Of a stretch of DNA of 64,000 bases, positions 3,206-52,060 are shown in pieces (within the stretch, counting starts at the first letter, position 1; the number at the start of each line of letters is the position of its first letter). The translations under genes and the position numbers were made by a program. The notes under the pieces were generated by a model. The model did no database searches. It saw only the letters and a list, made by a program, of their open reading frames with translations, and was not told the DNA's origin. The DNA is taken from the NCBI GenBank assembly GCA_030704615.1, contig CM060731.1:16988001-17052000 (forward strand), written 5' to 3'. Source of the stretch: Takakia lepidozioides. Its lineage: Eukaryota; Plantae; Bryophyta.

Positions 3206-3619
3206 CCAATGATCCCCACAAGAACAAACCCATATTGCAATTGCTTTCCATCTCCAACAACAATGGTTCAACCACTGATCTTTGAGATGAACTTGGTGGC
3301 CATTTTTTAGTCATGACTCATCAATGAACCCGAAGCCTTTCACTGTAGTGGCGAAGAGACAATCTCTTTCGCCCCTCCGCATCATGCACTACAAATTGCA
3401 TAATAAGTAGTACATAGCCTACCTCGCTCATCTGCCCAGACTATCACTTCAGCTCAACATGGATTTCCTCGATGTGCGGATGTGGCTTGTCTCCTTTAAT
3501 GAATATATATGTACAAGGTTGTCAACCTCAAGGCATCTGGACCTTTGGCACCATTCTGACACATGTGTCATCAATTTTCTCACCCTTCTTCTACATGCCA
3601 CCTGCCAACAGGTAGTGTC
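3206..3619 (-). pseudogene. Decayed E2/DYW deaminase domain downstream of the PPR stop codon
   Basis: Fragments in shifting frames: GRW, CLEVDNLVH, GDKPHPHIEEIHVELK**SGQMSEVGYV, FVVHDAEG...HYSERL, ATKFISKISG*TIVVGD, VCSCGDHW. They are collinear with the intact DYW domain at about 51540-52060. Confidence 0.85.
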
Positions 3620-6332
3620 TTATGGATCCAAGTTGAGAAGGCATTTTGCAACACTTTCTGCTACCTCCACATTGCCATGAATTCTGCAGGCGCCAAGAAC
3701 AGACGTCCTCGCCACCGCACATGGTTCAATTGGTATTTTGGTAATGAAATCCTCTGCTTCATCCAATCTGCCTGCACGGCTGAGAAGGTCCACCATGCAA
3801 CAAAAATGCTCGCCCCTAGGAGTGAGGCCATGAACTCGACTCATAGAATCGAAGTAGTGACTACCTTCAACCACTAGGCCCACATGGCTACATGCAGATA
3901 GAACAGATATGAAGGAGATATTGTCTGGCTTCAGACCTTCATGTTGCATTTGTTCAAATAGTTGCAGGGCCTCCCTACCATACCCATGCTGCCCATATCC
4001 TGCAATCATGGCGCTCCATGAGACCAAATCTCGTTCAGCCATATTGTCAAAGACTTGGCGTGCATCCTTCACACTCCCACATTTGGCATACATGTTAACA
4101 AGGGCATTCTCCAGATTGATATCTGACGCAATTCCAGCTTTGATGGAGTCAGAATGGACCGCTTTGCCTTTCTTCAGGGCTGCTAGGCTGGCGCATGCAT
4201 CAAAAACACAAATGAATGTTACCTTGTTGGGTGTCACTCCCTCTTGAATCATCCGCTCATACATCTGGAAAGCCTCCATACCACATGCATGCTGAGTATA
4301 TCCTGCAATCATCACACTCCATGACACCACATCTCGCTTAGCCATTTTGTCAAACACTAGACGCGCATCCACTAAACTCCCACATTTGGCATACATGTCG
4401 ATGAGGGTATTCGCCAGAATCATATCTGGCACAATTCCAGCTTTGATTATGTCGGAATGGATCTCTTTGCCCTTGTCCAGAGCTACTAGGCTGGCACACG
4501 CCTTGAGAACAGAAATGAAGGTGACCCTGTTGGGTGTCACCCCTTCCTGCATCATTTTTCCATAGATCTCAAATGCCTTCCTACCACACCCATACTGAGC
4601 ATATCCTGCAATCATTGCACTCCATGAGATCACATTTTGTCGGGCCATATTGTTGAATACATCACACGCATCGTTTATGCTCCCACATTTTGCATACATA
4701 TCAACCAGGGCAGTCTCCAGAACAATATCTAGCAAAATTCCAGCTTTCATGATGTCAGCATGGACCTCTTTGCCCTTTTCAAGGACTGCCAGGTTGGCAC
4801 ACACATTCAAGATGCAAACGAAAGAGACCCTGTCAGGCATCGCCCCTGCCTGTACCATGAGCTGATAGATATCGAAAGCCTCCATATCATACCCATTCTG
4901 AGAATATCCTGCCATCATTATCGTCCATGTAAACACATCTCGTTCAGACATTTTATTAAAAACTAGGCGTGCATCCACCATGCTTCTGCACTTGGCATAC
5001 ATATTGACTAGGACATTGAGTAGAAAAATGTTTGGCTTGAAACCACTCTGGATAATGTGGGCATGCACCTGCTTCCCCATTTTCAGGTTTTCAATTTTCA
5101 TGCACTCCCGTAAGAGACAGACATAAGTATTGGAGTCTGGCATAATGCCTTCTCTGTTCAAAATCTGCAGTGCCGCTCTCAGGTGTCCTGTCTTGCATAG
5201 TGTCCTCACCTGTCCACAAGAACCAGATAAGTTGTTGAGAGCAGCCAGTGCTGCTTTCACCCAAGGGGGGTTCGACCAACCCGTGATCCACAGGGCCTCA
5301 TTTGTACGCTTATGTGTGAAGTCTGGCGACCTTGGACTTTTCTGTGAAAACCACCAGTGGGAGCAGAGCAGCTCGATCTTCAACCATAGCCTTGCATAGA
5401 CCAGGCTAATACCATCAGACCTCCAACTATTTTGAACTTAAAGGGAACAAGCCTTAAAAACCTGCTGATACTAACAGTAAGGACCGCTTCTGCTGCTTTT
5501 AGGTGACATAGTCTTTGAGGGACTGACATACAATCCAAAACATGGCGGCTTCAATACCCACCCCTCCTTGACAAACTATTTCACCTGTCAACATAAAATA
5601 GCCTCACTTTATCAAACCTGTCGTCCCACCACTGAGAAGGGTCGGAGAAGAACTCCCGCCAGAGTTGTTCTTTGCTCTTGCATTGACCTGCGTGCAAGAA
5701 CTACAGGACAATGAGAACATGCAAGCTTCTAATTGCCTTGGTCCCGATTATGGCCTTAGTGCTTCAATCTAGATCTTGGCAGCTGCTTTTAGATTTAGTC
5801 CAGGAGGTCTAGTGTATACTTTCCATAAAGTTCAACTCACTTCCTCTCACACACTCACTCTCCCAAACAAATGCGACGAATGGAAAGTACTAAATTAATC
5901 AGAAACTGCTGCAGATCCTAACGGAGGAGGATAAGGCTGTCGATTACGCTCGGAAAAGTGAACTTTTCGACAAAGATGGTTGCAATTCTGCTTCTGAATC
6001 AAGGACAATCGACCGTGAATAGCTCCGCTGAAAAACTATGAGGGATCCATTAGTGCCCTTCATGTCTGTATACCTTTCTTCGGTATCCTCGAAGGATCAG
6101 GGGACGTTACAACCATCACTCGCAAGGGTCTGGTGCCCGAACTTGCCAAGCTGGATAAACATGTCAACTCCCCAACACGCCCTGTTGATCTGCGGCAGGA
6201 TGAGACGAATCCTTGAAGAACTGTTACCAACTTGGCCCAAAATATTCCGGCCCGTTCCCCGCAAGGAGAAGAAAGGGATTTCAGTAGGACCTCTGCCTGC
6301 AGAATCCGAAGAGCAGCGGAGCGCGCTGCCAT
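3620..6332 (-). CDS. PDF-motif + PLS-class PPR protein (exons 6332-6074, 5687-5608, 5341-3620; about 686 aa), ending after E1
   Basis: The main ORF has 14 PPR motifs (LSP x3, L, S, P2, L2, S2) plus E1. Upstream exons have phase-compatible GT-AG sites (AAAG|GTATAC; CGCAG|GT; AAA|GTGAGG; TTCACAG|AAA). Splicing gives LWREFFSDPSQWWDDRFDK-KSPRSPDFTHKRTNEALWITGWSNPPWV. Exon 1 (MAARSAALRIL...) is rich in Ala/Arg/Ser/Leu like an organellar presequence. The PPR part is certain; the exon model is inferred. Confidence 0.85.
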
Positions 6333-16040: not shown

Positions 16041-16539
16041 GGTGGACCAAAATCGGCAATTTTTCCTCCATGGAAGTCCATATAGGTACCTCAAATTGAG
16101 GGAATTTATCCAAATATTTAATTTTAGATTATAGATATGATATATTTAACACTTTTAGTAAAAAGTCCCACCCCAAATAGGCTAGAATTTTAGTATTTAA
16201 TTCTGAAAAATAGAAAATAGTTTTTTATTTCTAATAATTATAGATTTTTGAAATTTTTCCATATATCACTTGGCACCTCTAGATTATGGGTTTTTACACC
16301 ATTTTAGTAATAATGATATCCCAAAAGCCTCTAAATGAGGATGATGTACATTAGGGAAAATAGGCCCAGTTTGGGCCCAATGTTTAGTATAAATTAGTCC
16401 ATACCTCTCATTCTTGATGTTTTTAGTCCATATAAAAATGCATTTGGGTAGCTTTAAAAAATGGCACCCCTACTGTGTTTTTCTTTTTGTTATTACTTAG
16501 GTGTAGGGCGGAATGTTTTCTAGAAGAACTTCACGCCAT

Positions 16540-17575
16540 CTCAGCTGCTAGCAGCAAGGCTTAGGGATGTATTTATGATTTGTATACGGGCAGGGATAGC
16601 TGAAGGATTAGGGATAGTTGAGGGGCCAAGGATAGAGGTCCAGATTCATGTTCATGTTCAGGTTCGGGCTGAGGGATCAATAGCTACAAGAAATGAGCTG
16701 GAGTAGATGGTCAATTGTTGTAAGTGGAAACAGTAGCGGCAGCAGCACAATTGATAGAATGAGGTGCTGCTAATGAAGGTACTTTCCTCAACACATTTCA
16801 GCCTGTTTTTCCAAGTATGGTTGGGGTGTTTGCTAGAACAAATCTAGGCTGTCATCGTCAACGCTAGCAGCAAGGCAATGATGTATGCATGATTTTGTGC
16901 AGAGACATGGATAGTTGAAGGAGTAGGGATAGAGTGTGGGTGCAGATTCACCCAAGAGGGTCGGACTTCAAGCTCCAGATTGACTATGTAGCTACAAGAA
17001 ACCCAATCTAGGTAGATGGTCAACTCGTAGTAGCGGCACAATTTATAAAATCACACACTGCTAATGAAGGCCCATCTTCTTCGACACATTTCACCTTGTT
17101 TGTCCCTCTTATCAGAATCGGCCTTAAATTTTCGTGTTGAATTCTGCAAGTTAGCTAGTTGAGTGAATCTAGTTTGGAGTGACTTTGACATGATACGCAA
17201 AATGTGACAACATGAAAGTATCAAAAAACAAGTAACAAAGATGAGGAGAAGCTGTGGAATGAATACTTTTCTGCCCCAATCAATGATGAGACAACCGAGG
17301 CAAGAAAGTGAATGTTTGTTACATTTCAGAGAGTAGCAGACGCAATTCAACATAGGAACTAGTGTGATAAGCTGAGTTGGGTGTTTCCTACAACAAATCT
17401 AGGTTGTCATCGTCAGCTCATAGCAGCAAGGCATGGATGAATGCATGATTTGTGCAAGGGCATAGATAGCTGAAGGAGCAGGGATAGAGTGTGGGTACAG
17501 ATTCATCCTAGAAGGCTAGATTCTTGTGGATCAATAGCTACAAGAAACCTCCATGGGTAGATGGTCTATTCCGTG
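16540..17575 (+). pseudogene. Three tandem degenerate intron-exon units encoding PDF-motif halves
   Basis: The same intron block (agcagcaaggc...gggatagag..gggt(g/a)cag|attca) occurs three times. Exon relics: IHPRGSDFK (from 16946), EEKLWNEYFSAP..Q**DNRGKK|GT (17243-17307), IHPRRLD..LWINSYKKPPWVDGL (17501-17568). Confidence 0.75.
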
Positions 17576-19619: not shown

Positions 19620-20345
19620 GCAAGGTGTGTGCTGCTTCCACATGGAATTCTTAAAATCCGCCCTCTTGGATGAATCTGAACCTAATACCCTAGATTTGTT
19701 CCAGCAAACACCCCAACCCTACTTAGAGCACTAATTCCTATGCTGACTTGCGTTTGCTTCCAACAGGCATTCACCAAGTTTTGCCTGGATTGTTCCACCA
19801 TTGACTAGGGTCGGAAATGTATTCATTCCAGAGCTTCTCCACATCTTTATTATCTGTTTTTCGATACTTTCCTGTCAACCACAGTGGCAGTAACATGTCA
19901 AAATCACTCCAATACCACCATAGATCCACCAACGAGCTAACTTGCAGTATTCAACATGAAAATTTAGGGACGACTCTGATAGCAGGGGAAAACATGGTGA
20001 AATATGTTGAAGAAGATACTTTCATTAGCAGTGGGCCTTGTTTTATCAATTGTGCTGCTGCCGTTGTTGTTTCCAGTTGACCATCTACCCAGTTGTAGCC
20101 GCTGTGCTATTGAAGAAGGTGCCCCCCTTCCCCCATCATTTGATCATAGGTCTCCAAAGCCTCCATACCATGTCCCTGCTGTGCATACCCTGCAAGCATC
20201 GCGTTCCATGACACCACATTTGGTTCAGCCATAGTATTGAAAACTCCCTTTGCATCCTTAATGCACCCACATTTGGCATAGACGTCCACCAAGGCAGTGT
20301 TCAGGATGACATCTGGTACAATTCCTGCTTTGACGATGTCACCAC
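19620..20345 (-). pseudogene. PLS-PPR fragment joined to a further PDF exon unit, cut off by LTR sequence at about 20346
   Basis: 20340-20125 reads DIVKAGIVPDVILNTALVDVYAKCGCIKDAKGVFNTMAEPNVVSWNAMLAGYAQQGHGMEALE. It is followed by WVDGQLE..., EKLWNEYISDPSQWWNN (19839-19789) and cag|IHPR. 19690-20095 is an inverted homologue of 17000-17400. Confidence 0.8.
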
Positions 20346-20670
20346 CTTGGTCGTTTTCCGGCTCGCACGCTTACTCACTAGTTTTTGGTCACCAACGGGC
20401 TTGCACCGCTCTCGGGGTTACTACTCCCTATATATACTTCTGTGACTGTCCGCGGGGGTTTCACAAACAACCCTACCATTTTATGGCAAACCACCATGAA
20501 AACCCTCGACTCCCGGTGGTGAGTCGCGGTGAGTCTTGGCCCACCCACCACGGCCCCATTGGGCCGTGATGAGTCCCAAGACTCCCCACGACTCCCACCA
20601 CAAGGTTTCCGCCCCATGGTGAGTTCTATGCCACCCCCACTAAGACCCACTAAGCTACCACCACCCCTTG

Positions 20671-21352
20671 TGTCGCGCACCTCACTTCGGTAAGCTCCCC
20701 TTCAAGTCATAGTTACTCGCTCCGATGCGCGCGCCTGACTCCCAACCTGGCCGCCCGGGCCAACTTGGAGCTTCGGCTGCTCACCGGGACATAACGGTCC
20801 CCCCTTCGATTCCCACTAAACCCTCCACCTATTTGGGCCTAGGGGAATTCCCTTTGGTAGATGGCAGTCCGGAACAGCTCCCCACTCTTTGGTCGCTTTT
20901 CGGCTCGCTCGCTTACTCACTAGTTTTTGGTCACCAATGGGCTTGCACCGTTCTCGGGTCACTACTCCCCTTATATATACTTCTGTAGCTGTCCGCGAGG
21001 GTTTCACAACCAGCCATGCCATTTTATGGCGAACCACCACGAAAACCCTCGACTCCCGGTGATGAGTCACGGTGAGTCTTGGCCCACTCACCACGGCCCC
21101 TCTGGACCGTGATGAGTCCCAAGACTCCCCACGACTCCCACCACGAGGTCTCCGCCCCCATGGTGAGTCCTATGCCACCCCCACCGCAACCCGATGTGCG
21201 GGGCTCCACCTAGTGAGCGCCTCCGCCTCCTTGAGTGCCTTGGGCACTCAAGGTGCTTCAGCCCCCCCATACCTATCGTTGCCGCTGCCCCCACCACAGG
21301 GGCAGCCCCTCATGTGTCCCGACCCCCTGCCTCAAGGCAAAGGGCCGCGACA
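20671..21352 (-). repeat. 3' LTR of chromovirus copy A (682 bp)
   Basis: 7-bp terminal inverted repeats; preceded on the minus strand by a G-rich tract (GGTAGGGGTGTG, 21353-21364). Confidence 0.9.
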
Positions 21353-24300
21353 CACACCCCTACCAACAGGGAGTCGATGTCCTCATCGACTTGTCCATTT
21401 TGTAGAAACGAACATCCAAGTTGTGGCGTCCCACATCAAGGAGTTTGTTTCCGTACCATGGCGTCCCATGGCAAAGAACCAGACCCCACACTTGACTCTA
21501 CTCTCCACTAGCTAGTTCGGCCGACTTCCTCCAAGTCCCGGCCAAGGGTGGAGCCTCTCAAGCTCCTCCCAGTGCACTCTTCTTGGCCTACTTCAAGGCC
21601 AAGGAACGATCCTCCCCGAGGATCGAATCGCCTTACTGCAACAACATTGCTTGCGATCGCTCATGATGCCGCTTTTGGCATCACCTTGAGCAAGGGTTCC
21701 CTGGAACCCTCTTTGACTAGGAAGATAACCTTGAACCAACCGTGCGCCCCAATCACTACAATTGGGTCCGCCTTGGAATGCTGGCATGAGGTACGGGAAC
21801 ACGCCGAAGCCGCACTACGACTTCGTCTCGAGGCTACACGATTATAGTACGTGAACGGAAGCACGTAGCTTCCGCGTTAGCCCGCACTACAAGACAACCC
21901 CCTCGGTAGCGCAGTCATAGTGCCAGGTGCGCACTAGCACGTGAACTCCCAAAGAAGGCGCAAGTTTCCTTGCCCCTTGGATGGGGGTCACCCGATTTCG
22001 GCACTACGCAAACACACGATTAACCCAATTTACCTCTCCCACTTTTATAAGCTAGCATGCATTCTACACACTAGTCAACCATATCATGCATCACCATTCC
22101 AGACAAAATAGGACGCACACATTTGGAATCCATTTCATTTATAGCACGTTTTGTACAATACAAGTTTTTGCAATCGGATTCCTAAACTAGCTAAACCGGG
22201 CTAAGCATGCATTTCCTCCCCCACGCTCCAAGGTTGATGTCCCCATCAACGCTTCTTGTGCTTTTGAGGTCGCCCTTCGAAAGCTGCAACCGCCTCAGAT
22301 GCGTTTCCCATTTCTGAGGCACGCACCCAAGATGCCTCCACATGATGATAGCCCTTCCATTTGACGAGATACTCCGTTTCTCGGTTCTTCAACCTCCTCG
22401 ACTTAAGTATTGCCTCCACCTCGTACTCAGGTTCATTTTCATGATCCAACAATATAGGTGGCGGACGCAACACTTGATGCCGATTCGGACGCGCTTCATC
22501 TTTGAAGTAAGGCTTCAAAAGGGAGACATGGAATACTGGGTGCACCTTGCTGTTTGCCGGTAGCTCCAATTCATACACAACCTCATTCATAACCTTCCGA
22601 ATGCGAAAGGTCCCGCATACGGAGGTACGAACTTCGGACTCACTTCGGAGTAGTCGAAAATTCTTGATGTTCAACCAGACCTCTGTGCCTGCCTCAAATT
22701 TCACTTCCCTCCGTTTCCGATTCGCCTGCCTTTCATACCGTTTCCTAGCTTTGGCAATGTTGTACTTTGCGAGCTTCAACAAACGCTCGCGTTCTTCCAG
22801 TACCGCCGCTACTGCCGGTTCCTCAACGTCCTGGGCGGCCCAACTTGTCGGCACCAGAGGTGCTTTTCCATAGACCAATACGAAAGGGGAAACTCCCGTT
22901 GCGGAGTGTTCTGTGTTATTATAACAGAACTCTGCCGCGTCTAAGTGTTCCACCCAGTCTGTTTGGTCTGCCGACACGTAATTCCGCAAGATCTGCTTCA
23001 CTACGGAATTCACTCTTTCTGTTTGGACGTCGGTCGTAGGTCGGAAGGCGGTGCTCATCTTCAGCCTCATCCCCATCTTCTTCCAAAGTGCCCTCCAAAA
23101 TTTACTCGTAAACTTTGGATCGCGGTCCGAGACCAATATCCTTCGGGACTCCATGATGCTTTAAGACGTGGGCGAAGTAAAATTGCCCTGTCTCCTGCGC
23201 CGTTGCCGTCTCTTTGGTGGGGATGAAATGGCCCATTTTACTGAACCTATCCACCACCACCATGATTGCATCGAATCCTTTTGACAGCGGCATATCAGTC
23301 ATGAAATCCATCGAGACGCTTTCCCAAGTCCCCTCTGGAATCGGCAAGGGTTGTAACAGCCCGGCTTGCTTTTTGTACTCGCTCCGGTTTTGTTGGCATG
23401 TGGTGCATGTCTTGACATACTCCTCTGCCTCCTCCCTCAGTTTGGGCCAGAAATGCTCTTTCTTCAAGAGTGCCGCAGTGTGCTTGGCTCCGCCGTGGCC
23501 CGCAAGCGGGCTATCATGGCATTCTCTCAAGAGACTATCTCTGATCCCTCCCTTCGGCACGTAGAGACATTTTTGCTTATACCGGAGCAGTCCATTTTGC
23601 AAGTGGAACTGCGATTTAACCCCCATCCTCAAGTCCTGCATCATGGACTTCGCCAGCTCATCTTCCGGCAAGCATTTCGGATCTTCCTTTGGAGCGTCGT
23701 CTCGCCCTTGTACACCAACAAGAGCTGCTGCTTTCTACTTAAAGCATCGGCCACCACGTTGTCTCGTCCCGGTTTGTACTGGATATCCACGTCGAACACC
23801 GCCAAAGTATCTTGCCACCTAAGTTGTTTTGGGGACAACTTGGGCTACGTGGCAAAATACTTCACCGTGACATTGTCCGTGAACACCTTCATTGGGTCGG
23901 AACCAACATAGTGGCGCCAAAGCTCAAGGCAATGCACCACTGCCTTCATCTCTTTTTTGTGCGTCGGCCACCGTCGCTCCACTTCATTCAGTTTCTTACT
24001 TTCGTAAGCTACTGGACGTCCATCTTGCATCAGTACACCCCCAATCGCGAAGTCCGACGCATTTGTATGAATCTCGAACGGACGATCGAACTCCGGGATT
24101 TTCAAGACTGGAGCTTCCGCCATCCGCTGCTTCAATCAGCAAAAGCTTGGCCACAAAAGGTGTTCCATGCCCAGACTTTAGATTTACACAGAAGGTCTGA
24201 CAGCGGCCCCGCAATCTTGGCAAAATTTCTCACATACTTCCGGTAATAGGAGGCGAGTCCTAGGAAGGATCGCACTCCCGGGACTGAAGTCGGAGGCTCC

Positions 24301-26833: not shown

Positions 26834-26845
26834 GCTCTGATACCA
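26834..26845 (-). promoter_or_regulatory. Primer-binding site for initiator tRNA-Met
   Basis: TGGTATCAGAGC on the minus strand, 2 nt inside the LTR-terminal CA. Confidence 0.92.
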
Positions 26846-26847
26846 AG

Positions 26848-30500: not shown

Positions 30501-32935
30501 GGACCGGAGCTTCCGCCATCCGATGCTTCAACTCGGCAAAAGCTTGGCCACAAAAGGTGTTCCATACCCATACCTTGGATTTACACAGAAGGTCCGACAG
30601 CGGCCCCGCGATCTTGGCGAAACTTCTCACATACTTTCGGTAATAGGAGGCGAGTCTTAGGAAGGATCGCACTCCCGGGACCAAAGTCAGAGGCTCCCAG
30701 TCCAAGATCACCCTCACCTTTATGTCATCCATTTTGATCCCATCCTGTATAATCATATGCCCTAGGAACTCTACTTTTGTGACCCCAAATTCGCACTTTG
30801 AAGCTTTGGCATACAGCTTCCCTTCCCGCAATTTCTGGAACACCCTTTTGAGGTGCTCCAGGTGCTCTTCATTTGTTTGATGTACACGATCACATAGTCA
30901 TCCAACCACTCCTGGAAAATGTTGTTCATTAGCGGGCTAAAGGTCGCGGGTGCGTTGGTGAGCCCAAAAGGCATCACCAAGAACTAATACGAACCATATC
31001 TTGTCCTGCACGCGGTCTTCTCCTCATCTCCTTCCGCCACTCGGATTTGATGGTAGCCAGAGCGCAAATCGATCCGGCTGAAATACTTTGCTCATGCCAA
31101 CCGATCGAAGAGGTTGTTGATCCTTGGCAAATGGTACCGGTTCTTGATAGTCACCTTATTCAGAGCCCTATAATCGACACACATCCGCAGCGTCCCATCC
31201 TTCTTGTTTGCGAATAGCACCGGGGCTCCGTAGGGTGACTTATTTGGCCGGATGTACCCCTTTGACATTAGATCCTTGAGCTGAGCCTTCAGCTTGACCA
31301 ACTCTCTGTGGCTCAACCGGTAGGGCACCTTGGCAGGCGGCTCCGATCCCGGTATAACCTCAATCTTGTGGTCAACTCCTCTTCGCGGTGGCAAGCCACT
31401 TGGTAAATCCTCCGGCATCACATCCTGGTATTTCTCCAAAATCCCCTTGATCCAACACAGAAGCTGGAAAGTTTGCAGCACAAGCAAGGCTGATTTTGAA
31501 AAGAAAGGCAAAATCAGCAGGTGCTCTCATTGACGACATTGCCAAGCAGTCAACCACAAGTACAGTGGAGCTCGGAGGTTTCCTAGTTGCACATCAACTT
31601 CTACACTGGTAGAGAAAGCAAGAATTGATGAGGGGAGGGCATCCCACCATAAAGGCAGTGCTAACAAACTCCGTGAAAGATCTCTTGATCTTGAGGCCTT
31701 GCTCACCACACACCAAAACCAGGCCGCAGAGTGGGCTGCCTCCATGGAGGCTTTGCTGGCCACAGCTCAGAAGACGCACGTTGAAATGGACTGGCCGACT
31801 GCTCTCAGCTGGTGCCAGCACTTGGAAGGTGGACTTGGATTCCATGATGTAGCTGCCAACCACAACATCCAAATGCTTTGGAGTGGCCCACTCTTTTGCT
31901 GACAGCAGGTTTATTTGCCCTCCCACTGGGTTGGGCGTTTCCGACACTCATAAAACTTTGCCACCATTCCCACACGGTGGCGTGACTACTTTCTTGCGGC
32001 CATCTATGACCGCTCCGGATTTGCTCAAAAAGGTCATCCCCAAAGTGAGATCCACTTCATCGTCTTGCAAATGGTGAAGATCTCGCAAATGGTGAAATTC
32101 TCACGTCCCTCCCAACTCCCCAGCTGAAGAGGAACATCGAACGCCAACCTCGTCGCCCGTTGTGGTTCTACTTTGGCCGAACACACTTCAATGGAGGCCC
32201 CCACATCACTTGTCGGGAGCCCCAGCTTCCGTGCCGTTGCCGGTGTCATGAAGGAGTGCGATGCTCCTGTGTCCACCAACAACGACACGTTAGTTCCAGA
32301 GATTATCCCACTCACGAACATTAACTGACTCCCTTTACGCAAGTCGCCAGTTTCCTGATACAACTCACAAGAGTAGTTGCCTACCTTGCAAGTCTTGGCG
32401 ACCACCGCCTCCACCAAGCGGCTGATGGACTCTTCGGACAACTCCGTGGAAGCCCGAGTCATGTTCAATTGTCGGGGTTTCGCGCATTTCTTAGCCATGT
32501 GCTCGGGTTCCCCGCAATTAAAACACACTCCATCGAAGGTCGCCTTCTGTCCGCCATAAGCCGCCGCACCTGATTTTCTTTTCGAAGCACCGGGTGCCGC
32601 CTTGACGTGTGAAGGACCTCCCTTCGATTTCCACGTGCCGTTGTCGCCGCGTGACCTATCCCACTTCTTTTCCGGTCAAAAGGAGTCACCCTCCCGCCGG
32701 GTCTTCTTGTGGTTCAGCTCCGTACGGCCTTGTCTTTCGCCCTTAGGGACATCCGAGAAACATTCAGCCCTTTTAATTGCCTCGTTCAAAGTCTTAGGTG
32801 GCTTCTCCTCCAACTTCCGTCTGGCCCATGGGGCCAATCCCGCCACAAAGTTGAAGACCATTTCTGGTTCTGCCATGTCCGCGACTTCGAGCAACAGCAC
32901 ATTGAAAGCCTGAACATATCCGCGAATGTCATCCG
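27578..32935 (-). mobile_element. Host chromovirus copy B of the same family, 5'-truncated in gag; its 3' LTR is split into ~20346-20670 and 27583-27763
   Basis: Collinear with copy A from chromodomain to gag. The two LTR halves rejoin as ...ccaccccttg|tggaaccacc..., matching the intact 5' LTR sequence at 27390-27415. Confidence 0.9.
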
Positions 32936-33099
32936 TTTACTCCCTCTTATTGATAAATGAACACTAGACCATAATAATAATAATATTATTATTATTTATC
33001 ACTTTTTGCTATTTATGAAAAGTCCAGATTTCATGTTTTAGTCCAGATTTAGCTAAAACCTAGTTGTCCCATGTACACTTCTCACACTTCCTCCTCACT

Positions 33100-38441: not shown

Positions 38442-38560
38442 TGATGCCCCATAATCCCTTAGCCTTATAATCTGCTTTATCTATTATGTATCTGTCAGAG
38501 TTCATCCTCAGCATTTAGTGGAGGACAACGTTTGAGCCGTTATACCTTGCTTGGCCCATA
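38442..38560 (+). repeat. Short second copy of the MULE-like sequence that begins at 14677
   Basis: tgatgccccataatccc(c/t)tagcctta(g/t)aatctgctttatc...gagcc..tt.taccttg..tggccca is shared by both sites. Confidence 0.8.
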
Positions 38561-40040: not shown

Positions 40041-43000
40041 TCAGAGAAGCTCGCCAGAGAGTCGTTGCAGGAAGCACTGCTCTAGGGAGGCCACATGGGC
40101 GTGCCGTATGGAGGGTGGATTGTGCACGTTGAGCGCTGGCTGCTGGAGCAAAGCTATCAAGGCACTGACACGTTCCTCGTCCCCACTTTTGGCATGCATG
40201 GAGACCAGCAGCTCCAGTATTGGGACCTGAACCATTGCAAACCAGATAAGGTGTTTTTATTTGTTCAAAGGCTGTTTCAGACATCTTCCTGAGAGAGGAG
40301 GAATAGCGCATGATGCAGAGAAGGCTCCAGCATTTGAGTTCCGATTCAAAAGGTGATTTTTAATATCACGGACCTATTCCAGTCACCAAAGTTTCAAATA
40401 AGGGAGTCAAGCAAGCTCTATTGCTACTTGAGTCAGTATGAGTGATAAGATTCTGCCACTCTCTTGCCGAACAGGATATTTGACATACCTCCCAGATACA
40501 CTCAAAGTAGGCAGCAGCGTCGCGGTCAGCAACAAGGGAAACCTCTTGCAAAATGCGGAACGCAGACTCATGGTCAGGCACTGGTAAACACTGGCATAGC
40601 ACCGCTGCCTGCACACCTGCCCCTATTGCTCGGCATGCTGCCACCATCCTCCTTATCTGTTAAGCCAGCCCCCAGAGTATCAATCAGTCGTCGTTGCTGA
40701 GACAGAACCTCTACACTCCCGGGGTGTCAATCAAGATTCAAGGCCTGCAATGTGATAGCTTGAAGTGCTGACCAGAAATGATCAGAGCAGTCAGACTAAT
40801 CTTCCTCCGGGTTCGAGTGCAGAACCGAGGTAAAAACATGTGCAAGGTTTGGGACATCCACTATCCATTTGGACTGAGCAGTGTGAGTAGACATACACAG
40901 TCTGTACAGAAGAGGAGGGTGAAGTGGAAGTTTCTAGAGCAAAGCTTGTGAGCAAGGACGCCTCTGTTAACGACCTCAATTTACTATTCATTTCTTCACA
41001 TGATGACAATCCTCTGTAGTTTGCAAGTACTCAGCTAACTTACCACCCAGGGAGTGAAAATGTCACGAGGCATGGAGGAGGCTCGATCACAATAATTCGC
41101 ACTTCTGATCGCCCCAGCCTGCACAAAATTGAACTTAAGTAATAGTCCATCATCAGCAGTTGGTCGCTCCAATACAAGGTTTCAAACTTTTGAACTTAAA
41201 AACCCTTGCCATCCATGTGACAGTTGTTGCTAGATATGGAGATTGTGACACCCTATTACCACTCAAACATCTCATTCGACTGTCCACCCAAGCGTTCGAG
41301 CATGAAGAGAGAGATGATTCAGAGCACAGTCAGTGTAAATAAGAGCATCTTCCCCTTGCAGGTTACTGCCCCCTTTCGGCGGTGGGGGGGGGACAGTGTT
41401 CTTAGGTACTGATTGTCACTGAAAAAAAAACTAGAGAGCTTCAGAACAATGTTTCTGCCACCCAAGACAATAATTAGACTGTTATAGGCTTATAATTTAT
41501 ACCAACTCAAGAACATTGGAGGGAATTTATCACCAGCATCAGGCTTCACTGTACAGGGAAGAATATCCTAACTATGTTGCTCCGTGATTAGAACTGGCAA
41601 CTATTTCAAGCTGTCATACAGTCTTCGAAGCATTAGATGGTTACTTACTTCCACAAAGTCCCTCAAGCTGTTCGCACTCTCTAGGATATGAACTACTGCC
41701 AGCGTAATCCAAAGCTCCCTTCTCCAGAAAACAGCCTGTAAGGTATCAACCAGTTCAATACAGCAGACAGAAATGGGTCACCTGCAAATAGAGTTGAAGG
41801 GCCTTAACATAGGCCTCATCTTCAAATGCCAGATCAGCAAGACCTTGGAGCCAGCGATGGCCCTTCTCCTTATCTCCTTCCACCACTCCAGGAAGTGCAA
41901 CAATCACTTCCAGCAATACTCCAAACAAATCCCGTCCAAATTCAGGTGAAACCCTTGGAGGGACAGGTCGGTAGACAGATGCTGCATGAGGAAGTGAGCC
42001 TAGAGGAGGAGGTAGAGAGGCCGCTGCTGTGACACCGGCAAGCACTCCATACCTTTCAACTGCAAGAGCCCATGGTGTGAGCCCTGCTGCATGACACCTG
42101 TGGAGCCACCCAGCCATCAAGCTTGCTAGGCTCACTAGCACTCGGGAATTTGACACTTGTGGAATGAGGGGCACTGCCTCGGCTCCTGGGTAAGCGGGTG
42201 GTGGTGCTATCTGCCCACTCTGATTCACCCGTGAATGAACTGAATCATCTCCCCCCTGTGATTGACCATCCACTTCCACACCAACCAACAAGCACATGAA
42301 GTCCTCAAAGAGTTGCCACATGGTCGATCCCATTCGTGCCACATCCTCATTGAAATGGTTGCGAGCTGTGGCAGCCTACAGGGATAAGAAATTTACTACT
42401 TTGATCAGGTGCAACCCAATAAAGTCCATAGAGAAGAAATCAGGGAAAAAACTACTTTTAACTTGTTTGCAATAAGAAAGAAACTAAGGTGCAGATCTAA
42501 AGTTTGTGGCATCTTTTTATTCTTTCACACCAGGGGTTTAAGTGGAAGCCCAGTACCTGCAGAGCACTACAAAGCTGCATTAAGTCGGCCAGTGCTGTTG
42601 CTACCTTCAGTGTTTGTGTAAACCTCTTGTGCATTGTCTGGGTGCCCATACCTTGCCCCTTCCCAAATCCCTGCAAAGAACCTTCACAACTTTTCCCTTC
42701 CACGGCCACTGAGTTCTTTGCCATTGATGCCCCCCACTGACAGACCTCCGACAGATCATTCCATAGTTCCTTCTCAATCAAACAGAGTATAGCATATTCT
42801 ACCAAGCCAAAGTTCAGTGACACCCCCTTATTCTCCTCTCGTAAAAGCAACCTAGCAGGACGGTTAATCTCTCCTTGGCTATCCTGCTGCGGGTTGACCT
42901 TCTCGAGCAGCCACAACATCAGAGAACTATCATAATCTTTGGGATGGGTCAGCCAAGCCAGCTCATATAACCTTTTAGCAGTATTAGGTTGCTTTCTACT

Positions 43001-46000
43001 GTCCAGGGCATTGAAAGCTCGCCGACACAAAAGGGCTGCCACATGAGCAGGGAATGTAGTCAATTTGGCACTGCAAGCTCTGGCATCTGCTGACTCGCAT
43101 TTGTTTCTGAGTCTTTCCCAAGAGCTTCTCTCTTTGCTAAGCATTATATGCCCATTCAAGGGTGATCTGAGATCCTCATAAACTTGACTCTCCCCTTCCT
43201 TTGTACAAGGGCGTACAAGAGCTGAGCTCTGTTGCATCCTACCAAGCATACATTTAACTATTTCGGATTCAGAGTTGGCTCGTACATCAGTGGCATGATC
43301 TGTTCTCTTAGCCTCAAGGACAAGAGCCTCAATTTCACCAAGGCTCTCAGCATGCAGAAGACCACACAATATCACTTCTTCCAAAGCAAAGTCTGGAAGC
43401 TGTTGCTGTTGTTGGCCTTCCTTTGAAGAATGTTTCAAAATTGCAAATTGATCAAGCTCATTGGGATCTTCAGTCCGTACAACCTCGTGGCCGGGGGTTT
43501 CAACTTGGCAGACTGGCTCCAGAGGTCTGCAATCAACAATAGGAGATGAACCTGTAGGTTTGGGTACAGGGCCAGCAATTCCTGAATTGAGGATGGGCAT
43601 CTCAGGAACTTGGGCAGCAATCCTTGGAATATCTGTTGGCCTAATGAGGCTGTTTTTAACAGCAGATTCCCAGCACCATTCTTGATCCAAAACACAGCAC
43701 ACATATAGCGCAAGTTCGCAGATAAGCGAGGCCATAGACTGGCCATCAAACACCTTCTTTGCTTCAGTAAACTTCCTTTTCAGTCCTTGGATTTGTGCCT
43801 GCCCATTGTAAGTTGGGTCTGCCCCAATACCGGCATCACTACCCCCTGCAATCGTATGGCATTTCAACTTCACTGCAGCCATGAGGCCCATGAGAAAATC
43901 GACCCCCTGTTTGCTGTTCTGAAATGCCTCGCTGACCCTGAGAAAAATCTGGATGGGCTCTCCCTCCAGAATGCGTCTTACCACATTGCATGCTATGAGC
44001 TGGCAGCGCATAGAGACGGGGATGAGAGGATCTCTCTCCAGTGAAAGTCGGTAACCCCACAGTAAAAGACCTTGAAGAGTATCATTCGCTACAGTCTGAA
44101 CCACACTCTTGCCAATATCCCCTGTTGCAGCTAAGCTTAGGTTGGCATCATCAGATAAAAAATTATCCTCTTCAGAAACTCCCTTCGGCTGCACACAAAA
44201 ATCTACCTCTTGTCCAAAGTGCTTAATCTCTCTGAAGTTTTCCCTCATGTCTGATTTTTGTTTCACTGTGTTCCTCCTCTCCTTGCTTCTAACTAGCTCG
44301 TAATTGATGGATTCCGAAGTGGTTTGCTGGGAGACAACTAAGTTCACATCTGTGCCGTCAATTTCCACTTCATTAGAAGTTCCTTCTGCCAAGCTTGGTA
44401 GGGCCTTACTGGTCTTGACACCGTGACCCTCACTGGGACCTACTCGAACGCCAGGGTCATCCAATGCTTCCTTAGTACCCTCAAATCCAAGCCCTTGACC
44501 AGGCTCTTCTCTCTCTGTATGCTCCACTTCCTGCACACTTCCTTCAGCAAGGCTAAGTACTTTGACCCTCTTATTCCCACGCTGAGCGATGCTACAATCA
44601 TCCATCGTCACTGTCCGCTCTGTGTTTTCTCCTATATTACGCTTGCCATTTGTCCCTGCCTTTTCCACTTCTGCTTTGAAGAATTCAGCTTCTCGTAACA
44701 CCGCATTGGAGGCAATGGCAGGTGGCAGCATGTCATCCTTGGCTGAGGTGACCAGTAGTGACAGAATGTCCTGCATATCTCTCCTTGCATACCACCTCTG
44801 CTGTTCACAGGCTATGACAGACCATTGAGCTGGAGATGGAGTGCCAAGGATGGGCAAAGGAGGGTCATGGAATCCGATACCGTCTCGAAATTGTCTCCTT
44901 TTCTTCCCATGGCTTGGGCCTGCTTGTGTACCCAGAAGCATCCGGCAGGCTATGATAAAACCAGACAGCCTAGCCCTTGCTACGGGAGATGCTGGCTGTA
45001 AGCCACCCATGCACTCAGATTTTCTAGAATCTAGGGCCGAGCATGGACCTGCTTGATTCTCAGCCTCAGCTGGAAATTTCTCAGAATCGTAAAGGGACTC
45101 TAGCAACACCCCACAACTAGTGAAGAATTCATGAGCTCTCTGAATCCTTCCCCTCATGAAATGCACCTCAGCAACATCCAACATAACTTGGCACCTGTAG
45201 GAGGACAACCATCGGTTGAACAATCAATCATTTATACACATACTACAATGTGACTCAACGTTTGGTGCCGGTTAGCCCACAGATGGATGTAACACTTATT
45301 GAGTCAGACCTCAGCTGCTGCTAAACACAGGTCAGCAAATATGCATTGCTAAGGATGCACCTAAGGCCCAAAACCTACCATGGGGGTGCCTGAAATCCTC
45401 CACAATGCCACTGCATTGCACTGGTGTGCACGACGCAATGGGTAGATTAACCAGGCCCATCTCCCTCCAGTTTGTGGGCCTATGTATGTTTGCAACTCGT
45501 CAGCGCAAAACTTACAGTCAATAGCTGCTCAGCAAAGACTCACTAACCGGTAATCCTTGCTCATGAAGCTTCCTACTGGTTCCCGATTATGAACAAATTT
45601 GTTGGCGCTGTGTTGGATCTCCTCTTTCTGTAAAATAACCGAGTCTGTCAACCCAATATCAGTGATCATTGGGTCACACTGTCCATTTGCAACAGCAGAA
45701 TCCAAACTCATGGGTTCTGCTACCCCCTGCAGGACAGCCTCTTCATCTTCCCTCAAGACCCTCTCCAAAAACTCAACCGATGGCCTTTCCTCCTCCACAC
45801 AAGCATCCCCTTCCATGCCACTGCCACCTCCCCCACACACAAGTGGACACCTGCTTGCATTCCCAGAGGGCTTGAACAAATCAGCCAGGTCCTCTCCTTT
45901 TAGACATGCACCTGACCGCAACCCAGGAAAAACATTATTTGAAGCAGCTGATCCCAAAGGATGTGATTGCAAAGAACTCCGCAGGATCCAGCGGTGAAGA

Positions 46001-47135
46001 TTACATTCATGTATCCTGTGACTGATTTTGTCATGCTTTACCAAGGCCTTCAGCAGCATGAACTGATGTTGCTGTGAGACAATAGAACTCTCAATCTCAA
46101 CTAGCGAAAGCTTTGCTGCCACTGCCACTCTTGCAGCTCTCTCACAAAGCAAGGCCGCCGTTCTTCCTGCCATTTTGCTTGTACCCTGCGATACCCCTTG
46201 CACCTGAGATGGCTGCAGGACCATTTTTGGTTCCAACCAGATCAAGTACAGATGAGAAGGCTTTACTTACAGTACTAATTTATAGCAGATAACAAGGGTC
46301 AACAAAATGCTCACTGTCCATCGTCAGGTGAGCTACTGAAACATTATTTTTCTTGTCAATGAACGTAGAATCTTCTACAGCAGCTTTGTTCATATTTAGG
46401 TAGGCTGCTAGTGATGCATGTTCCGCGATCTGTGCCTACATGGCTTGGCGGTGCAGACCACTAAGTTCAAAACCAACCATGGTGAATTGTAGTCTTTGAA
46501 ATAGGAAATCTCCGTTCAAACCTCGGCTTTCTAGCTCTTATAGATTTGACCCCTTCGTCCTAAGAACATCTTCGTTCACAAACTTGGTTCTTTACAGCTG
46601 ATTCCTCTGAAGAGGAATCAGCCTACTTAACTACGAACTTTTCGGGAATCAAAAGAGCCTCAGACCGGTGAATCCAGGGAAGCATATCTGCATCGCAACC
46701 TCATCCAATCGAAGAAAAACTGCAATCTTGACTATTACATGATCACCCTTCGGCTCATAGGTAGTAAGGTCACCAAAAAAACCCACACTTCATGAAACAA
46801 TATGAAACTCGCCCAATTCTCAAACCTAGCTAATTTTTTCCGTAATCCATCTCTCCTATACGACAATGACAGAATACACGGCAAGCAAAGAGAATCCCTA
46901 CCCCATCTTTGGCAAGACTAGATGTAGAGCTCCCGTGGGCAGACTTGTAATTTACTAACGCCTGCTCCAAGAACATTGCAATGAGATCCGCAGGCGCAGG
47001 GCTGGCCGCCTGCCCTTCGGCCAGTGCGACCAGATGTTGCTCAAGCATTTCAGGAAGCAAGATATAATCGATCCATAGCGAAGTTGCAGCCCCCGCATCC
47101 CCTCGAGGGCCCCGGTCCCTGTCCCTGTCCGCCAT
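40041..47135 (-). CDS. INTS8: Integrator complex subunit 8 homologue, 7 exons (47135-46902, 46203-45548, 45194-42557, 42375-41782, 41118-41044, 40656-40489, 40226-40041), about 1516 aa
   Basis: All six introns are GT-AG and phase-compatible. The N-terminus LWIDYILLPEMLEQHL...PAPADLIAMFLEQA resembles INTS8 WFEFLL...LEKHL...PAPVQLIVQFLEQA. The C-terminus WLQGLADLAF...ALQLYLQAGAIRS...QAAVLCQCL..PDHESAFRILQE...YFECIWEVPILELL...LN..NP parallels the INTS8 C-terminal block. Confidence 0.88.
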
Positions 47136-47527
47136 CACCGTCTCACCACCCACCCACCATCATCCTCAGGTCGATTCTTCTAGCTTCTCGCTGCCCTGCG
47201 TCCGCCATAGCTCTAGCCGAGCACCAGACAACGTTACGCTACCAAATGACGAACGGCGAATGGTAATGTGAATCGTTCGTCAGGAAATGAACTCTCCGTT
47301 ACCCATCAAACATGATGCAATGGAGTCCTCAACTCGGACTGCTCCACACTGGCCTTCGTCCCTCCTTCAGCGTTTTTTAAAGGGATCTCCCTTGCTGAAA
47401 CATTCAGAAAGATGTGGGCTGTCTCTCATCAAATGACAATACTGCATTTCATTAAGAACGTGTAAGCTGTTTTATCGGGGGAGGGGGGCAGTAGGTGAGC
47501 AAGGAGGTCACCTGGTGGGGGACATCA

Positions 47528-50500
47528 ATGACTGGCCATGTACGCCCTTGGCCACTTTCAGCGAGGAATTTGTTAACACAGCGCAAATGGGCTGTGGCTG
47601 TGGCATGGCGAAGTATTCGGATAAGGGAAAGGGGTTGGCGTATGCCGGCCTTGCTGTGCCAAACATTGTCTAAGAAACTGAAGTTCGGAGATGGTAAAGT
47701 ATTTCCCTCGGACACAAAGGTTAAAAGGAGCTGCACGAGCCTCTCAAATTCCGTGTTATACAAGTGATGTCAGTCTCTAGGGACGCCATCACAAAAGTCC
47801 CATTGCATCAGTCAAACCTCTACCTACCAAGCTAGAGGGTGTGTGAGCTGTCCTCTGGATCAACCCCACGCTCTCTAGTATGAGGGCCAATTCCTGTGCA
47901 TTACTCAGTAATCAATGACGTAACTCAATTGTTTTTGGCTGTCCACGATGATGTTGAGGCTGTCTATAGAATACTGTGGTGGTCTGAGTTCCAATCGATC
48001 TCTAGAGAGCAATTATCCCACAGGGCGCCTTGACACATTGCAAAACTCACTAACTCCAATCTTGTGCTTTCTAAATAATGTTGCCCTGAGACCAATACTC
48101 AATCCCGTGTAATCAGATTGTTTCGTTGCCTGGACACAGTCAGTATGATGATTTCGCTTCATTGTGCTGGATTGGAGCCACACCAGAGACATATATGAGT
48201 ATCCTTTGGAGGTTAGTCCTACATGGGTTATATGTCATAGCCAAAACTTGCAAGCATGTATTCCCCCTAGCTCTCTCTCCCTCACACACACATTTGAACT
48301 CTTGCCTTCAATACAGTGTAGGAATTAGTGTTCTGGTAGTTCTGTAAATATGGGCTGTAAGTGACAGCTACCTGCAGCATGGGGAAGGATCTGGTTGCAT
48401 TTTTGTTGTGGGGCAGGAATGGAGTGCGGGTGCAGATTATTCGGAGTGGACCAGATTCCAAGCCTGAGTGGACCATCAAGGCATTGTGGATTGATAGCCA
48501 GAAGAAATCAGTGTGGGTAGGTGGTCAATTGGAGTAGCGAAACCAATTGGGCAAAGGTCTTCAGCTAGTGCTGGTGTACGGGTGTCAGTGGTGCTCTTCT
48601 AGTATGACAAGCCTTCCTCTTTTACACATGCAGAGCTCTCAGTCTTCTGATATGCCTCTTTAGCTGCATGGGTGTCCAAAATACCCCCATGCCAGGAGAC
48701 TGAGACAAGGAGCATGGCTTGTACTTCTTTTAATATGGGAATAATTACTTGACATAAATGGAGCATATAAGTGTTGTGGAGGTTGGGGTGCTTTATATTA
48801 TACCCAAAAAAGACATCCTGTTTAAAATGTAGCAAGGAGCCTATCCACATGAATCCTTTTCAAAAGTATTATAGAGAAGCTTTGAGTTTATTATGTGTGT
48901 GCAAGTTTTTGATTAAGAGTCGTGCAGTGTAGCAGGGTTGAACCATGGACATCTGTTCGAGTCAGACACCACCACCTCGATCACTTTTTTCGAAAGAGGA
49001 CCAAGAGAGGGACTTGTTAAGAACTCTGCTGGTACTTGGGAAGATGTGAGGGCTCTATGTAAAGCAGGACAGCTGAAAGAGGCGCTGCACATGTTGAAAC
49101 AACAACCCATTTTGGCAGACTCCAGTACTTATGTCTGTCTCTTGCAGGGTTGCATCAAGATCAAAGGCTTGACAGAAGGAAAGCAAGTGCACGCCCACAT
49201 TATCCAACGTGCATTCAAGCCAAACATCTTTCTACTCAACAACCTTATCAACATGTATGCCAAGTGTGGGAGCATGATGGATGCATGTCAAGTTTTTGAC
49301 AAAATGCTAGAACGGGATATATTTACGTGGAATACAATGATAGCAGGATATGCCAAGAATTGTTGTGGTCAGGCAGCTTTAGAGATCTATGAGAAAATGC
49401 AAGGGGAAGGGTTGACACCAAACAGGCTCACGTTCACTTCCATCCTCAATGCATGTGCCAGCCTAGCATCTCTGGAAGAAGGTAAACAGGTCCATGCTGA
49501 CATTGTGAAATCTGGAATCGTGCCAGATGTTATTCTCGAGAATGCCCTTATATCCATGTATGCCAAATGTGGGAGCATGAGAGATGCACGTCGAGTGCTT
49601 GAAGATATGCCTCGACAAGATGTGATATCATGGAACACAATGATCGCAGGATACAGTCAGCATGAGTGTGGTAGGGAGGCTTTGGATATCTTTGGGCAAA
49701 TGATACTTGAAGGGGTGCAACCGAACAGGATCACATTCACTTGTGTTCTCAGTGTGTGTGCCAGCCTGGCAGCTCTGGAAATGGGCAAAGAAGTTCATGC
49801 TTTCATAATGAAAGCTGGAATTGTACCAGACGTCATTCTGGAAAACACCCTTGTTGACATGTATGCCAAATGTGGGAGCATGAAGGATGCATGTCAAGTG
49901 CTCAACAATATGGCTCAACGAGATGTAGTCTCATGGAATGCCTTGATTGCAGGATATGTTCAGCATGGATTTGGTAGGGAGGCTTTGAATAGCTATGAGC
50001 AAATGATACTGGATGGGGTGGTGCCGGACAACATCACAGTCACTTGCATCCTTAATACATGTGCCAGCCTGGACGCCTTGGAAAGGGGTAAAGAGATCCA
50101 TGCTGTCATAAACAAAGCTGGAATGATGTCAAATATCACTCTTGATACTGCCCTTGTCGCCATGTATGTCAGATGCGGGAGTATGAGGGATGCACGTGCA
50201 GTGTTTGACAATATGGCTGTACGGAGTGTGGTCGCCTGGAACACAATAATTACAGGGTATGCTCAGTTTGGGAGTGGTAGGGAGGCTTTCGAGATCTATG
50301 AGCAAATGACAAGCGAACGGGTGAATCCGGACAATGTCACATTCACTTGTGTTCTCAATGTGTGTGCCAGCCTTGCAGCCCTGGAGAAGGGCATAGAGGT
50401 CAACACACACATCATCAAAGCTGGAATCACACCAGACATCATTTTGAATACTGCTCTTGTCGCAATGTATGCAAAATGCGGGAGCATTAAGGATGCACGT

Positions 50501-52060
50501 CAAGTGTTCAATGATATGACTCAACGAAGTGTGGTGTCATGGAACACGATGATTGCTGGATATGCTCATTATGGGTGTGGTAAGGAAGTTTTCGAGATTT
50601 ATGAGCAAATGATATCAGAAGGGGTGCAGCCAGACAAGGTCACATTCACTTGCCTTCTCAAGGTGTGCGCCAGTCGGGCATGTCTGGAAAAGGGCATAGA
50701 GGTTCATGCTGGCATTTGCAAAGCAAAAATATCACCAGATATCATTTTGGAGACTACCCTTGTTGATATGTATTCCAAATGCAGGAGAATGACGGATGCT
50801 CGTCAAGTGTTTGACAACATGGCTGAACGAGATGTGGTCTCATGGAATGCCATGATTGCAGGATATACTCAGCATCAGTCTGGTAGGGAGGCTTTGGAGG
50901 TATATAAGCAAATGATAGGAAAAGGGGTGATGCCCAACAAGGTCACGTTCATTTGCGTTCTCAATGCATGTGCCAGCCTCGCAGCCCTGCAAAAGGGCAA
51001 AGAGGTTCATGCTGACATCATCAAAATTGGAGTTGCACCAGATCTCATCCTGGGGAATACCCTTGTTGACATGTATGCTAAATGTGGGAGCATGAAGGAT
51101 GCACGCCAAGTGCTTGACGGTATGGTTGAACGCGATGTGGTCTCATGGAATGCGATGATTGCAGGGTATGCCCATCATGGTTGTGGAATAGAAGCCCTGC
51201 AATTATTTGAGGATATGCTAGAGCAAGGTTTGAAGCCGAATGGCATCACCTTTGTATGTCTTCTCTCTGCATGCAGCCACGTGGGCCTGGTAGATGAAGG
51301 TGGTCGATACTTTGATTCCATGAGTCGAGATCACGGCCTCACTCCTAAGGTGGAGCACTTTGGTTGCATGGTGGATCTTCTAGGCCGTGCAGGGCGTCTG
51401 GATGAGGCAGAGGACTTCATCAGAAAAATGCCTATAGAACCAAATGATTCAGTGTGGCGGGCCTTGCTTGGTGCTTGCAGAAATCATGGCAATGTGGAGC
51501 TAGCAGAACGCATGGCAACATGCCTTCTCAAAGTAAATCCTCAGGATGCTGCAACTTATGTGCTGCTATCAAACATTTATGCTGCAAGTGGCAGGTGGGA
51601 TGATCACGCAAAGGTGATGAAAAAGATGGAGGACAGAAGTGTGAGAAAGTTGCCAGGTCACAGCTGCATTGAGGTGGATAACCAGGTGCATACATTTGTT
51701 ATTGATGACAAATCACATCCACAAATTGCTGAAATCCAAGCCGAGCTGAAGAGATTGTCGAGGGAGATGAGGGAGGCTGGGTATGTGCCTGACACACAAT
51801 TTGTATTGCATGATGTAGAGGAAGAGCAAAAGGAATTACATCTTTGCCACCACAGTGAGAAGCTGGCTATTGCTTTTGGCCTCATCAGCACACCGCCTGG
51901 GACGCCTATCCGTGTCATCAACAACCTCCGGGTGTGTGGTGACTGCCATACGGCCACCAAGGTTATCTCAAAGATTGTTGCGCGAGGTATTGTTGTACGA
52001 GATGCCAATCGCTTCCACCACTTCCAAGATGGAGTTTGTTCTTGTGGGGATTTCTGGTAA
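47528..52060 (+). CDS. PLS-E1-E2-DYW PPR protein (PG-type, C-to-U organellar RNA editing factor); main exon 48936-52060, putative first exon 47528-47693
   Basis: 1040-aa ORF with 23 PPR motifs (7 L, 7 S, 6 P, then P2-L2-S2), E1/E2, PG box KLPGHSCIEV, HSEKLA, CGDCH and terminal CSCGDFW. The ORF opens after a CAG acceptor (48935) with no early ATG. An Arg/Trp/Ala-rich upstream exon ends in a phase-compatible G|GTAAAG donor (inferred). Confidence 0.93.
48436..48537 (+). pseudogene. Degenerate second-half PDF exon upstream of the DYW-PPR main exon
   Basis: After gggtgcag the frame reads IIRSGPDSKPEWTIKALWIDSQKKSVWVGGQLE*. The preceding ~120 nt resemble the intron of the 16.5-17.6 kb units. Confidence 0.7.

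Follow-up and report, generated by a model that had tools for sequence, protein, structure and literature searches.

The 64,000-nucleotide (nt) stretch of Takakia lepidozioides analysed here (contig CM060731.1, positions 16,988,001 to 17,052,000), called the window below, is nuclear and comes from an early-diverging land plant. It carries pentatricopeptide repeat (PPR) genes of the PLS class, a calcium-dependent protein kinase (CDPK) gene and nested Ty3/Gypsy elements at ~20.3-33 kb. The original prediction, made from the letters of the window, had been that all three of its PPR loci contain an intron-split PDF motif, known from the OSB proteins, and that they belong to a family of PDF-PPR-DYW proteins. 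Traces of PDF were found at each locus; nevertheless, locus 3 has kept the second half only and locus 2 is scrambled.

Locus 1 lies on the minus strand and has three exons with GT-AG borders (6332-6074, 5687-5608 and 5341-3620), which give an open frame of 686 aa. The frame runs from a leader through the intron-split PDF motif and the PLS-PPR tract to a stop in E1 (TAA, 3622-3620). The features are as follows.

6074..6332, minus strand: exon 1, an 86-codon leader rich in R, S, A and L, basic and acid-poor, with a phase-1 donor
5608..5687, minus strand: PDF exon A, 80 nt, starting in phase 1 and ending after WWDxRxxK in phase 0, 31.9 bits
5342..5607, minus strand: PDF-internal intron, 266 nt, phase 0, GT-AG
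3620..5341, minus strand: exon 3, the second PDF half in frame with the PLS-PPR tract, with the stop inside E1
4909..5209, minus strand: alternative intron in exon 3, 301 nt, GT-AG, skipped in one RNA contig and not in the DNA runs
3206..3619, minus strand: relic of E2, E+ and DYW with stops and frameshifts, tblastn E 3e-13, transcribed as 3′ untranslated region

An intact PDF and a dead DYW had been predicted for locus 1, and both were found. A PDF profile built from database proteins only gave the two halves 31.9 and 52.8 bits, against a maximum six-frame score of 6.3 in 20 shuffled windows. The ~50-aa signature (LW, WWDxR, PDF-K/H, LW, PxWV) is present, with one conserved Lys changed to Thr. 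Exon A has the same size and phases as in the Diphasiastrum protein P0080. No SSB-like OB fold was found before the PDF, which is preceded by the 86-aa leader alone, and this leader is probably an organelle targeting peptide.

Transcription was followed in run X5, which was taken as RNA by guess and comes from another study than the DNA runs. The exons of locus 1 are covered by X5, with zero contig depth at the six listed positions of the PDF intron. An RNA contig match ends at 6072, that is, at the exon 1 donor plus the shared GT, and an RNA contig end falls exactly at 5341, the start of exon 3; low-depth X5 contigs also extend into both introns. Splicing out 5209-4909 shifts the frame and leads to a 190-aa leader-PDF product. 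An RNA contig over 3213-3681 shows zero differences from the DNA, and the stop and the dead DYW are therefore real and transcribed. By DNA and RNA, locus 1 is a PLS-PPR protein without intact E2-DYW. Two further observations were made in the DNA runs. A second version, ~95% alike, was seen at 5565-5720 and 5125-5272, with 3-nt in-frame insertions in exon 3 and 1-base indels in the introns, and may be an allele or a close paralogue. The depth at exon A was several-fold that of the flanks, which is consistent with additional PDF copies.

In the case of locus 3, on the plus strand, three features were recognized.

47528..47693, plus strand: candidate exon 1, basic leader with a phase-1 donor, predicted only
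48436..48556, plus strand: dead PDF second-half cassette, 13.4 bits, with a stop (TAG, 48535-48537) and a relic phase-1 donor at 48556
48936..52060, plus strand: PPR exon, intact PLS-PPR-E1-E2-DYW with a phase-1 acceptor at its start

The PPR exon contains seven PLS triplets, P2-L2-S2, E1, E2 and a DYW domain that has the zinc ligands HSE and CxxC and ends in DFW; Pfam matches were obtained to PPR, E, E+ and DYW, the last three above cut-off. Joined to candidate exon 1, it gives an open frame of 1096 aa. The PDF half at 48436-48537 has an altered signature and lies in the first intron, so that the predicted pair of an intact DYW and a dead PDF half was recovered. No significant first PDF half was found at locus 3, the best candidate being matched by 14 of 300 shuffles, and the donor after WWDxRxxK is therefore not visible. 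Thus, an intron at the same place in all loci, as proposed earlier, holds for the position at locus 1, whereas locus 3 shows the acceptor only. Locus 3 appears to be a working editor after PDF loss.

Locus 2 is made up of pieces on both strands.

16514..17570, plus strand: decayed tandem PDF array, with second-half relics from 16644, 16946 and 17501 and a first-half relic at 17214-17307
19640..20099, minus strand: inverted PDF unit, composed of second-half tail, linker, first half (19871-19775), intron and the next second half from 19675
20125..20344, minus strand: PPR fragment of 73 codons with S-P motifs, its 5′ side cut by a long terminal repeat (LTR) element and its 3′ side joined to the PDF tail

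Decayed PDF units lie beside a PPR fragment here, as had been claimed; however, there are five second-half pieces and two first halves, in two opposite orientations. The inverted unit is 74% identical to the reversed 17008-17403 (E 5e-68) and scored 18 bits on the PDF profile. There is no PPR downstream of the plus-strand array, and the remainder of the PPR gene was not found past the retroelements. Since the PPR piece lies upstream of the PDF unit, the reverse of the family order, locus 2 is not a readable PDF(n)-PPR gene. On the sequence, one or more family members were rearranged here and left debris.

The existence of the family itself was established with database proteins. Of the 120 best E-DYW homologues of locus 3, three have a PDF at the N-terminus, and a search with the PDF motif of one such homologue gave 46 PPR proteins, whose sources are Sphagnum, Calypogeia, Diphasiastrum and environmental contigs. 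A complete DYW (HxE, CxxC, DYW-type end) is present in 24 of them and lacking in the other 22, and some have two or three PDFs; intact PDF-PPR-DYW members, as foreseen, are annotated in all three genera. The architecture leader-PDF(1-3)-PLS-PPR-E1-E2-DYW thus occurs in moss, liverwort and lycophyte proteins. No SSB domain was seen in the database fusions scanned. With a PDF half of locus 1, a word-indexed homologue search gave no match and exhaustive phmmer gave 206 proteins; the second half retrieves SSB+PDF proteins, that is, OSBs. There was no PDF model in the local Pfam copy. PF28390 is precomputed on several fusions and may be the PDF model, in which case the architecture may be visible in current Pfam. 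A 1371-aa transcript-derived protein (P0170) has three PDFs before the PLS tract and is fern-like at its ends. The full-text literature searched, from which subscription papers are mostly absent, contained no paper joining PDF or OSB to PPR editors, and neither PDF nor OSB is mentioned in the main text of a kingdom-wide 2026 survey of fusions among editing factors (PMC13386178). The PPR-DYW variant with an OSB-derived module, to which the three loci belong, is real and apparently undescribed.

The origin of the module is indicated by its introns. In Diphasiastrum P0080 and Calypogeia P0090, the phase-1 intron ahead of the PDF and the phase-0 intron within it occupy the positions seen at locus 1, and the same holds for single-PDF OSB genes (SSB+PDF) of the angiosperm Rehmannia, the liverwort Riccia and the lycophyte Diphasiastrum; a plant contig from ENA has the same inner intron. 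The match is to single-PDF OSB genes, because a multi-PDF Brassicaceae gene has its PDFs within one exon. From the shared phase-1 and phase-0 introns, the PDF module corresponds to the last two exons of an OSB1-type gene. One Sphagnum PDF-PPR member is intronless and has retained the PDF, in line with the PPR retroposition reported for such plants (PMC13386178). The fold of the PDF was modelled by AlphaFold with a 114-row alignment (pLDDT 85; 55 with single-sequence folding), and comparison with three ESM Atlas PPR/DYW clusters (127, 63 and 57 members) and an SSB cluster gave TM 0.86-0.91. Intron positions and predicted fold together show common descent of the PDF exons from an OSB1-type gene, and the SSB+PDF retrievals identify as the OSB motif what had earlier been called a putative single-stranded DNA (ssDNA)-binding module. 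In the PDB, a sequence search gave 0 matches and fold searches a best Z of 3.8; an Atlas feature search with the PDF motif gave no usable match. Two clusters of uncharacterised Uroviricota proteins matched the PDF model with TM 0.63-0.69, a short and weak match, and a prokaryotic or phage source of the motif is possible.

As to the mechanism of the fusion, a PPR-DYW frame would have come to lie in frame after the OSB PDF exons, in place of the OSB tail, with loss of the SSB exons. The 1-0-1 phase symmetry would then allow PDF units to be duplicated or skipped with the frame kept. Spread of the PDF exons by a transposon, independently of PPR genes, is a different account, for which the rearranged state of locus 2 and its contact with LTR elements could be quoted. 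We give it a negligible probability: all PDF relics found with the profile in the 64 kb are at the three PPR loci and 0 in the retroelement block, the intron positions are those of OSB genes, and in-frame PDF-PPR fusions occur in three phyla. The distribution of PDF exons independent of PPR genes, which the original prediction had named as damaging to it, was thus not seen in the window.

The relation among the three loci was examined by shuffling. None of 300 shuffles reached the alignment score between the dead second half of locus 3 and unit c of locus 2, and the same was found for the intron of unit c against that of locus 3 (score 38.5, 0 of 300), which bears out the predicted intron homology of loci 2 and 3. 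The remaining three locus-2 introns were matched by 2, 2 and 6 of 300 shuffles. The intron of locus 1 is not sequence-homologous to those of loci 2 and 3 (39 and 277 of 300), the position alone being common. Loci 2 and 3 thus share a cassette-type PDF module, and locus 1 is of a different subtype. As the cassette PDF and intron sequence of loci 2 and 3 are absent from locus 1, the three loci are not one recent local triplication.

The proposed tree of the P2-L2-S2-E1 region, from which isoforms, rows with a misassigned region and most Ginkgo rows were left out, placed loci 1 and 3 as sisters among the sampled rows (99/94); at locus 2 the region is missing. The sister relation may reflect species only, as no other paralogue from the same genome is in the tree. 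One clade (99/98) unites the members from Sphagnum and Calypogeia with some of those from Diphasiastrum. Loci 1 and 3 are not part of it; they fall in a group of poor resolution that also holds other Diphasiastrum fusions and gymnosperm rows without PDF. A clade of all PDF-PPR genes was not recovered. The Diphasiastrum PDF-PPR-DYW protein P0080 (L001) groups with Sphagnum proteins (97/94), with 75% identity to one of them, and apart from the other Diphasiastrum proteins; transfer, assembly contamination or slow evolution are possible.

The PPR targets are read from the P and S motifs by the standard PPR code. The predicted target of locus 1 is G,U,A,U,A,A,G,U at -6,-7,-9,-10,-12,-13,-15,-16 and that of locus 3 is Y,U,Y,G,U,A,U,A at the same positions (-6 to -16), so that two of the eight shared P/S code positions agree. 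This bears on the suggestion, made from the reciprocal domain loss, that locus 1 (PDF-PPR) and locus 3 (PPR-DYW) each retained the half missing in the other and act jointly in trans. Such joint action could be argued from the sister relation in the sampled tree, from the transcription and open PDF-PLS frame of locus 1, and from the supply of DYW in trans in angiosperms (PMC10482289). The predicted targets differ, however, locus 3 has its own full DYW and is self-sufficient rather than a short DYW donor, and locus 1 ends in E1 and has frame-breaking alternative splicing. With 22 of 46 members lacking a full DYW, such pairs arise by chance. The suggestion is therefore very unlikely. Since locus 3 needs no donor, locus 1 has no E2 and nearly half of the relatives are without full DYW, the loss pattern is explained by independent decay in a large family. 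The PDF loss of locus 3, the loss of the catalytic end in locus 1 and the debris at locus 2 would be independent birth-and-death events, and the loci look like ordinary decay products at different stages, not cooperating halves.

What the PDF does in the intact proteins can be approached from its known activity. In AtOSB1, the PDF alone suffices for ssDNA binding (PMC6963530). Editing by the moss factor PPR56 is inhibited by RNA secondary structure (PMC10482289), MORF proteins are restricted to seed plants and the PPR expansion proceeded by dispersed duplication (PMC13386178). We propose, with a probability of about 0.55, that the PDF is a sequence-independent single-strand grip or nucleoid tether built into an otherwise normal organellar C-to-U RNA editor. 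The PPR tract would select the RNA site and the DYW domain would deaminate the C, as in known factors. The PDF would hold single-stranded nucleic acid, thereby adding avidity, preventing the target from folding or anchoring the editor on nascent RNA at the nucleoid, and could serve as a built-in helper in plants without MORF proteins.

Cross-phylum identity (liverwort, moss, lycophyte) is 66-70% for the PDF, 56-61% for P2-L2-S2-E1 and 20-26% for the leader. The PDF is thus kept across phyla like the PPR tract, with the leader at background, which suggests selection. These values bear on the idea that the PDF is a passenger, i.e., that a PPR-DYW copy took over an OSB gene's promoter together with its targeting exon and PDF exons, and that the PDF acts as a folded spacer or solubility cap with binding irrelevant. 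That loci 2 and 3 have a lost or dead PDF, yet locus 3 is intact, that PDF-less editors work (PMC10482289) and that near-identical Sphagnum proteins are annotated with and without PDF would all fit this idea. It is harder to reconcile with the identity values, with the invariant D, R, W and PDF columns common to the PDF-PPR and OSB copies, and with the PDF kept in the intronless Sphagnum copy; we regard it as unlikely, though the strongest competitor.

Contact with protein offers another role, in which the PDF oligomerises or docks the editor on OSB or nucleoid proteins and does not touch nucleic acid directly. AtOSB2 is a tetramer (PMC6963530), the PDF is predicted as a compact independent fold (pLDDT 85) and locus 1 has a PDF-only splice form; ssDNA binding, on the other hand, is the sole tested activity of the motif, which makes this role improbable.

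The preference of the PDF for ssDNA (PMC4166229) raises the question of a DNA substrate, with the PDF bringing DYW to organellar ssDNA (R-loops, replication or recombination intermediates) for C to U conversion. Synthetic P-type PPR tracts bind ssDNA by the same code (PMC12733224) and the bacterial DYW-like SsdA is reported to deaminate ssDNA. In opposition to this, the PPR, E and DYW parts are those of ordinary C-to-U RNA editors, the large family matches the many RNA-editing sites of such plants and site-specific DNA deamination would erase its own target. An ssDNA deaminase is highly improbable on these grounds. The broader proposition, that seedless plants possess a large family of natural PPR-DYW deaminases guided by their OSB-derived PDF to organellar ssDNA or R-loops, some of which would work on DNA or link editing with DNA metabolism in the nucleoid, is a long shot too, by the slightest margin less so.

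Several points weigh against the single-strand grip as the function of the PDF in an RNA editor. OSB1/2 prefer ssDNA over RNA (PMC4166229). Physcomitrium-type PPR-DYW factors function without PDF (PMC10482289), P0093 being one such PDF-less factor, and as these work and the frame of locus 3 is intact without PDF, the module is dispensable. The conservation figure for the PDF carries an upward bias, as similarity in this very motif was the criterion of retrieval. That all PDF-PPR genes go back to one origin was not rejected (approximately unbiased (AU) test, p 0.25), nor was it shown. Finally, the splice between the PDF halves of locus 1 (A-B) is backed by RNA coverage and contig ends; its support is indirect, since the junction is absent among the listed joints.

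Three other features of the window were recorded.

20347..33000, minus strand: at least two related decayed Ty3/Gypsy chromodomain-type elements with LTRs ~90% alike, one of which truncates the locus-2 PPR piece
42497..46245, minus strand: two long open reading frames (ORFs) of 238 and 908 aa, head to head with locus 3, no Pfam match; Atlas features suggest Integrator subunit 10 (0.91, a weak recognition)
59946..61724, plus strand: complete CDPK gene in a single ORF

Introns are usual in plant CDPK genes, and the copy in the window may be a retrocopy.

Several known systems come close to the family. The PLS-class PPR-DYW (PG-type) editors, e.g., PPR56 and PPR65 of Physcomitrium, likewise have PLS, E1, E2, DYW with HxE and CxxC and an organelle leader, and locus 3 is 65-73% identical to PLS-class PPR-DYW proteins over E-DYW. 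The PDF-PPR family differs by one to three OSB-type PDFs between leader and PPR, the Physcomitrium and seed-plant rows examined being PDF-less. OSB1-4 and pTAC9 (SSB fold plus PDF) share the ~55-aa motif (each half 48-65% identical to that of locus 1), the predicted fold and the two intron positions of single-PDF OSB genes; the PDF-PPR proteins, in contrast, have no SSB fold and carry the PDF at the N-terminus, followed by the PPR-DYW tract. In helper-domain fusions (MORF-RRM in ORRM1; RRM-P, RRM-E, RRM-DYW and MORF-P, PMC13386178) an accessory nucleic-acid- or PPR-binding domain is likewise placed on the editing machinery, whereas the PDF fusion is unnamed in the main text of that survey and its source is a DNA-maintenance gene. 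Locus 1 resembles the angiosperm E+/E2-class PPRs, which recruit DYW1, DYW2 or MEF8 in trans, in being PLS without DYW, and differs by its stop inside E1, with no complete E1-E2(-E+) end. Locus 3 is no short DYW donor like these trans partners; it is long and complete as an editor in itself.

The seedless-plant PPR-DYW editors have so far been taken as a PPR tract plus a deaminase only. With a conserved module that stems from a DNA-maintenance gene and occurs in liverworts, mosses and lycophytes, a subclass is added that is unnamed in recent family surveys, and the common introns give the PDF module a concrete origin. For tests, intact members elsewhere are better suited than the copies in the window. 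If the PDF raises single-strand affinity, it would be a small natural part for synthetic PPR editors. Moreover, the finding bears on how editors in plants with many sites and without MORF helpers handle structured RNA.

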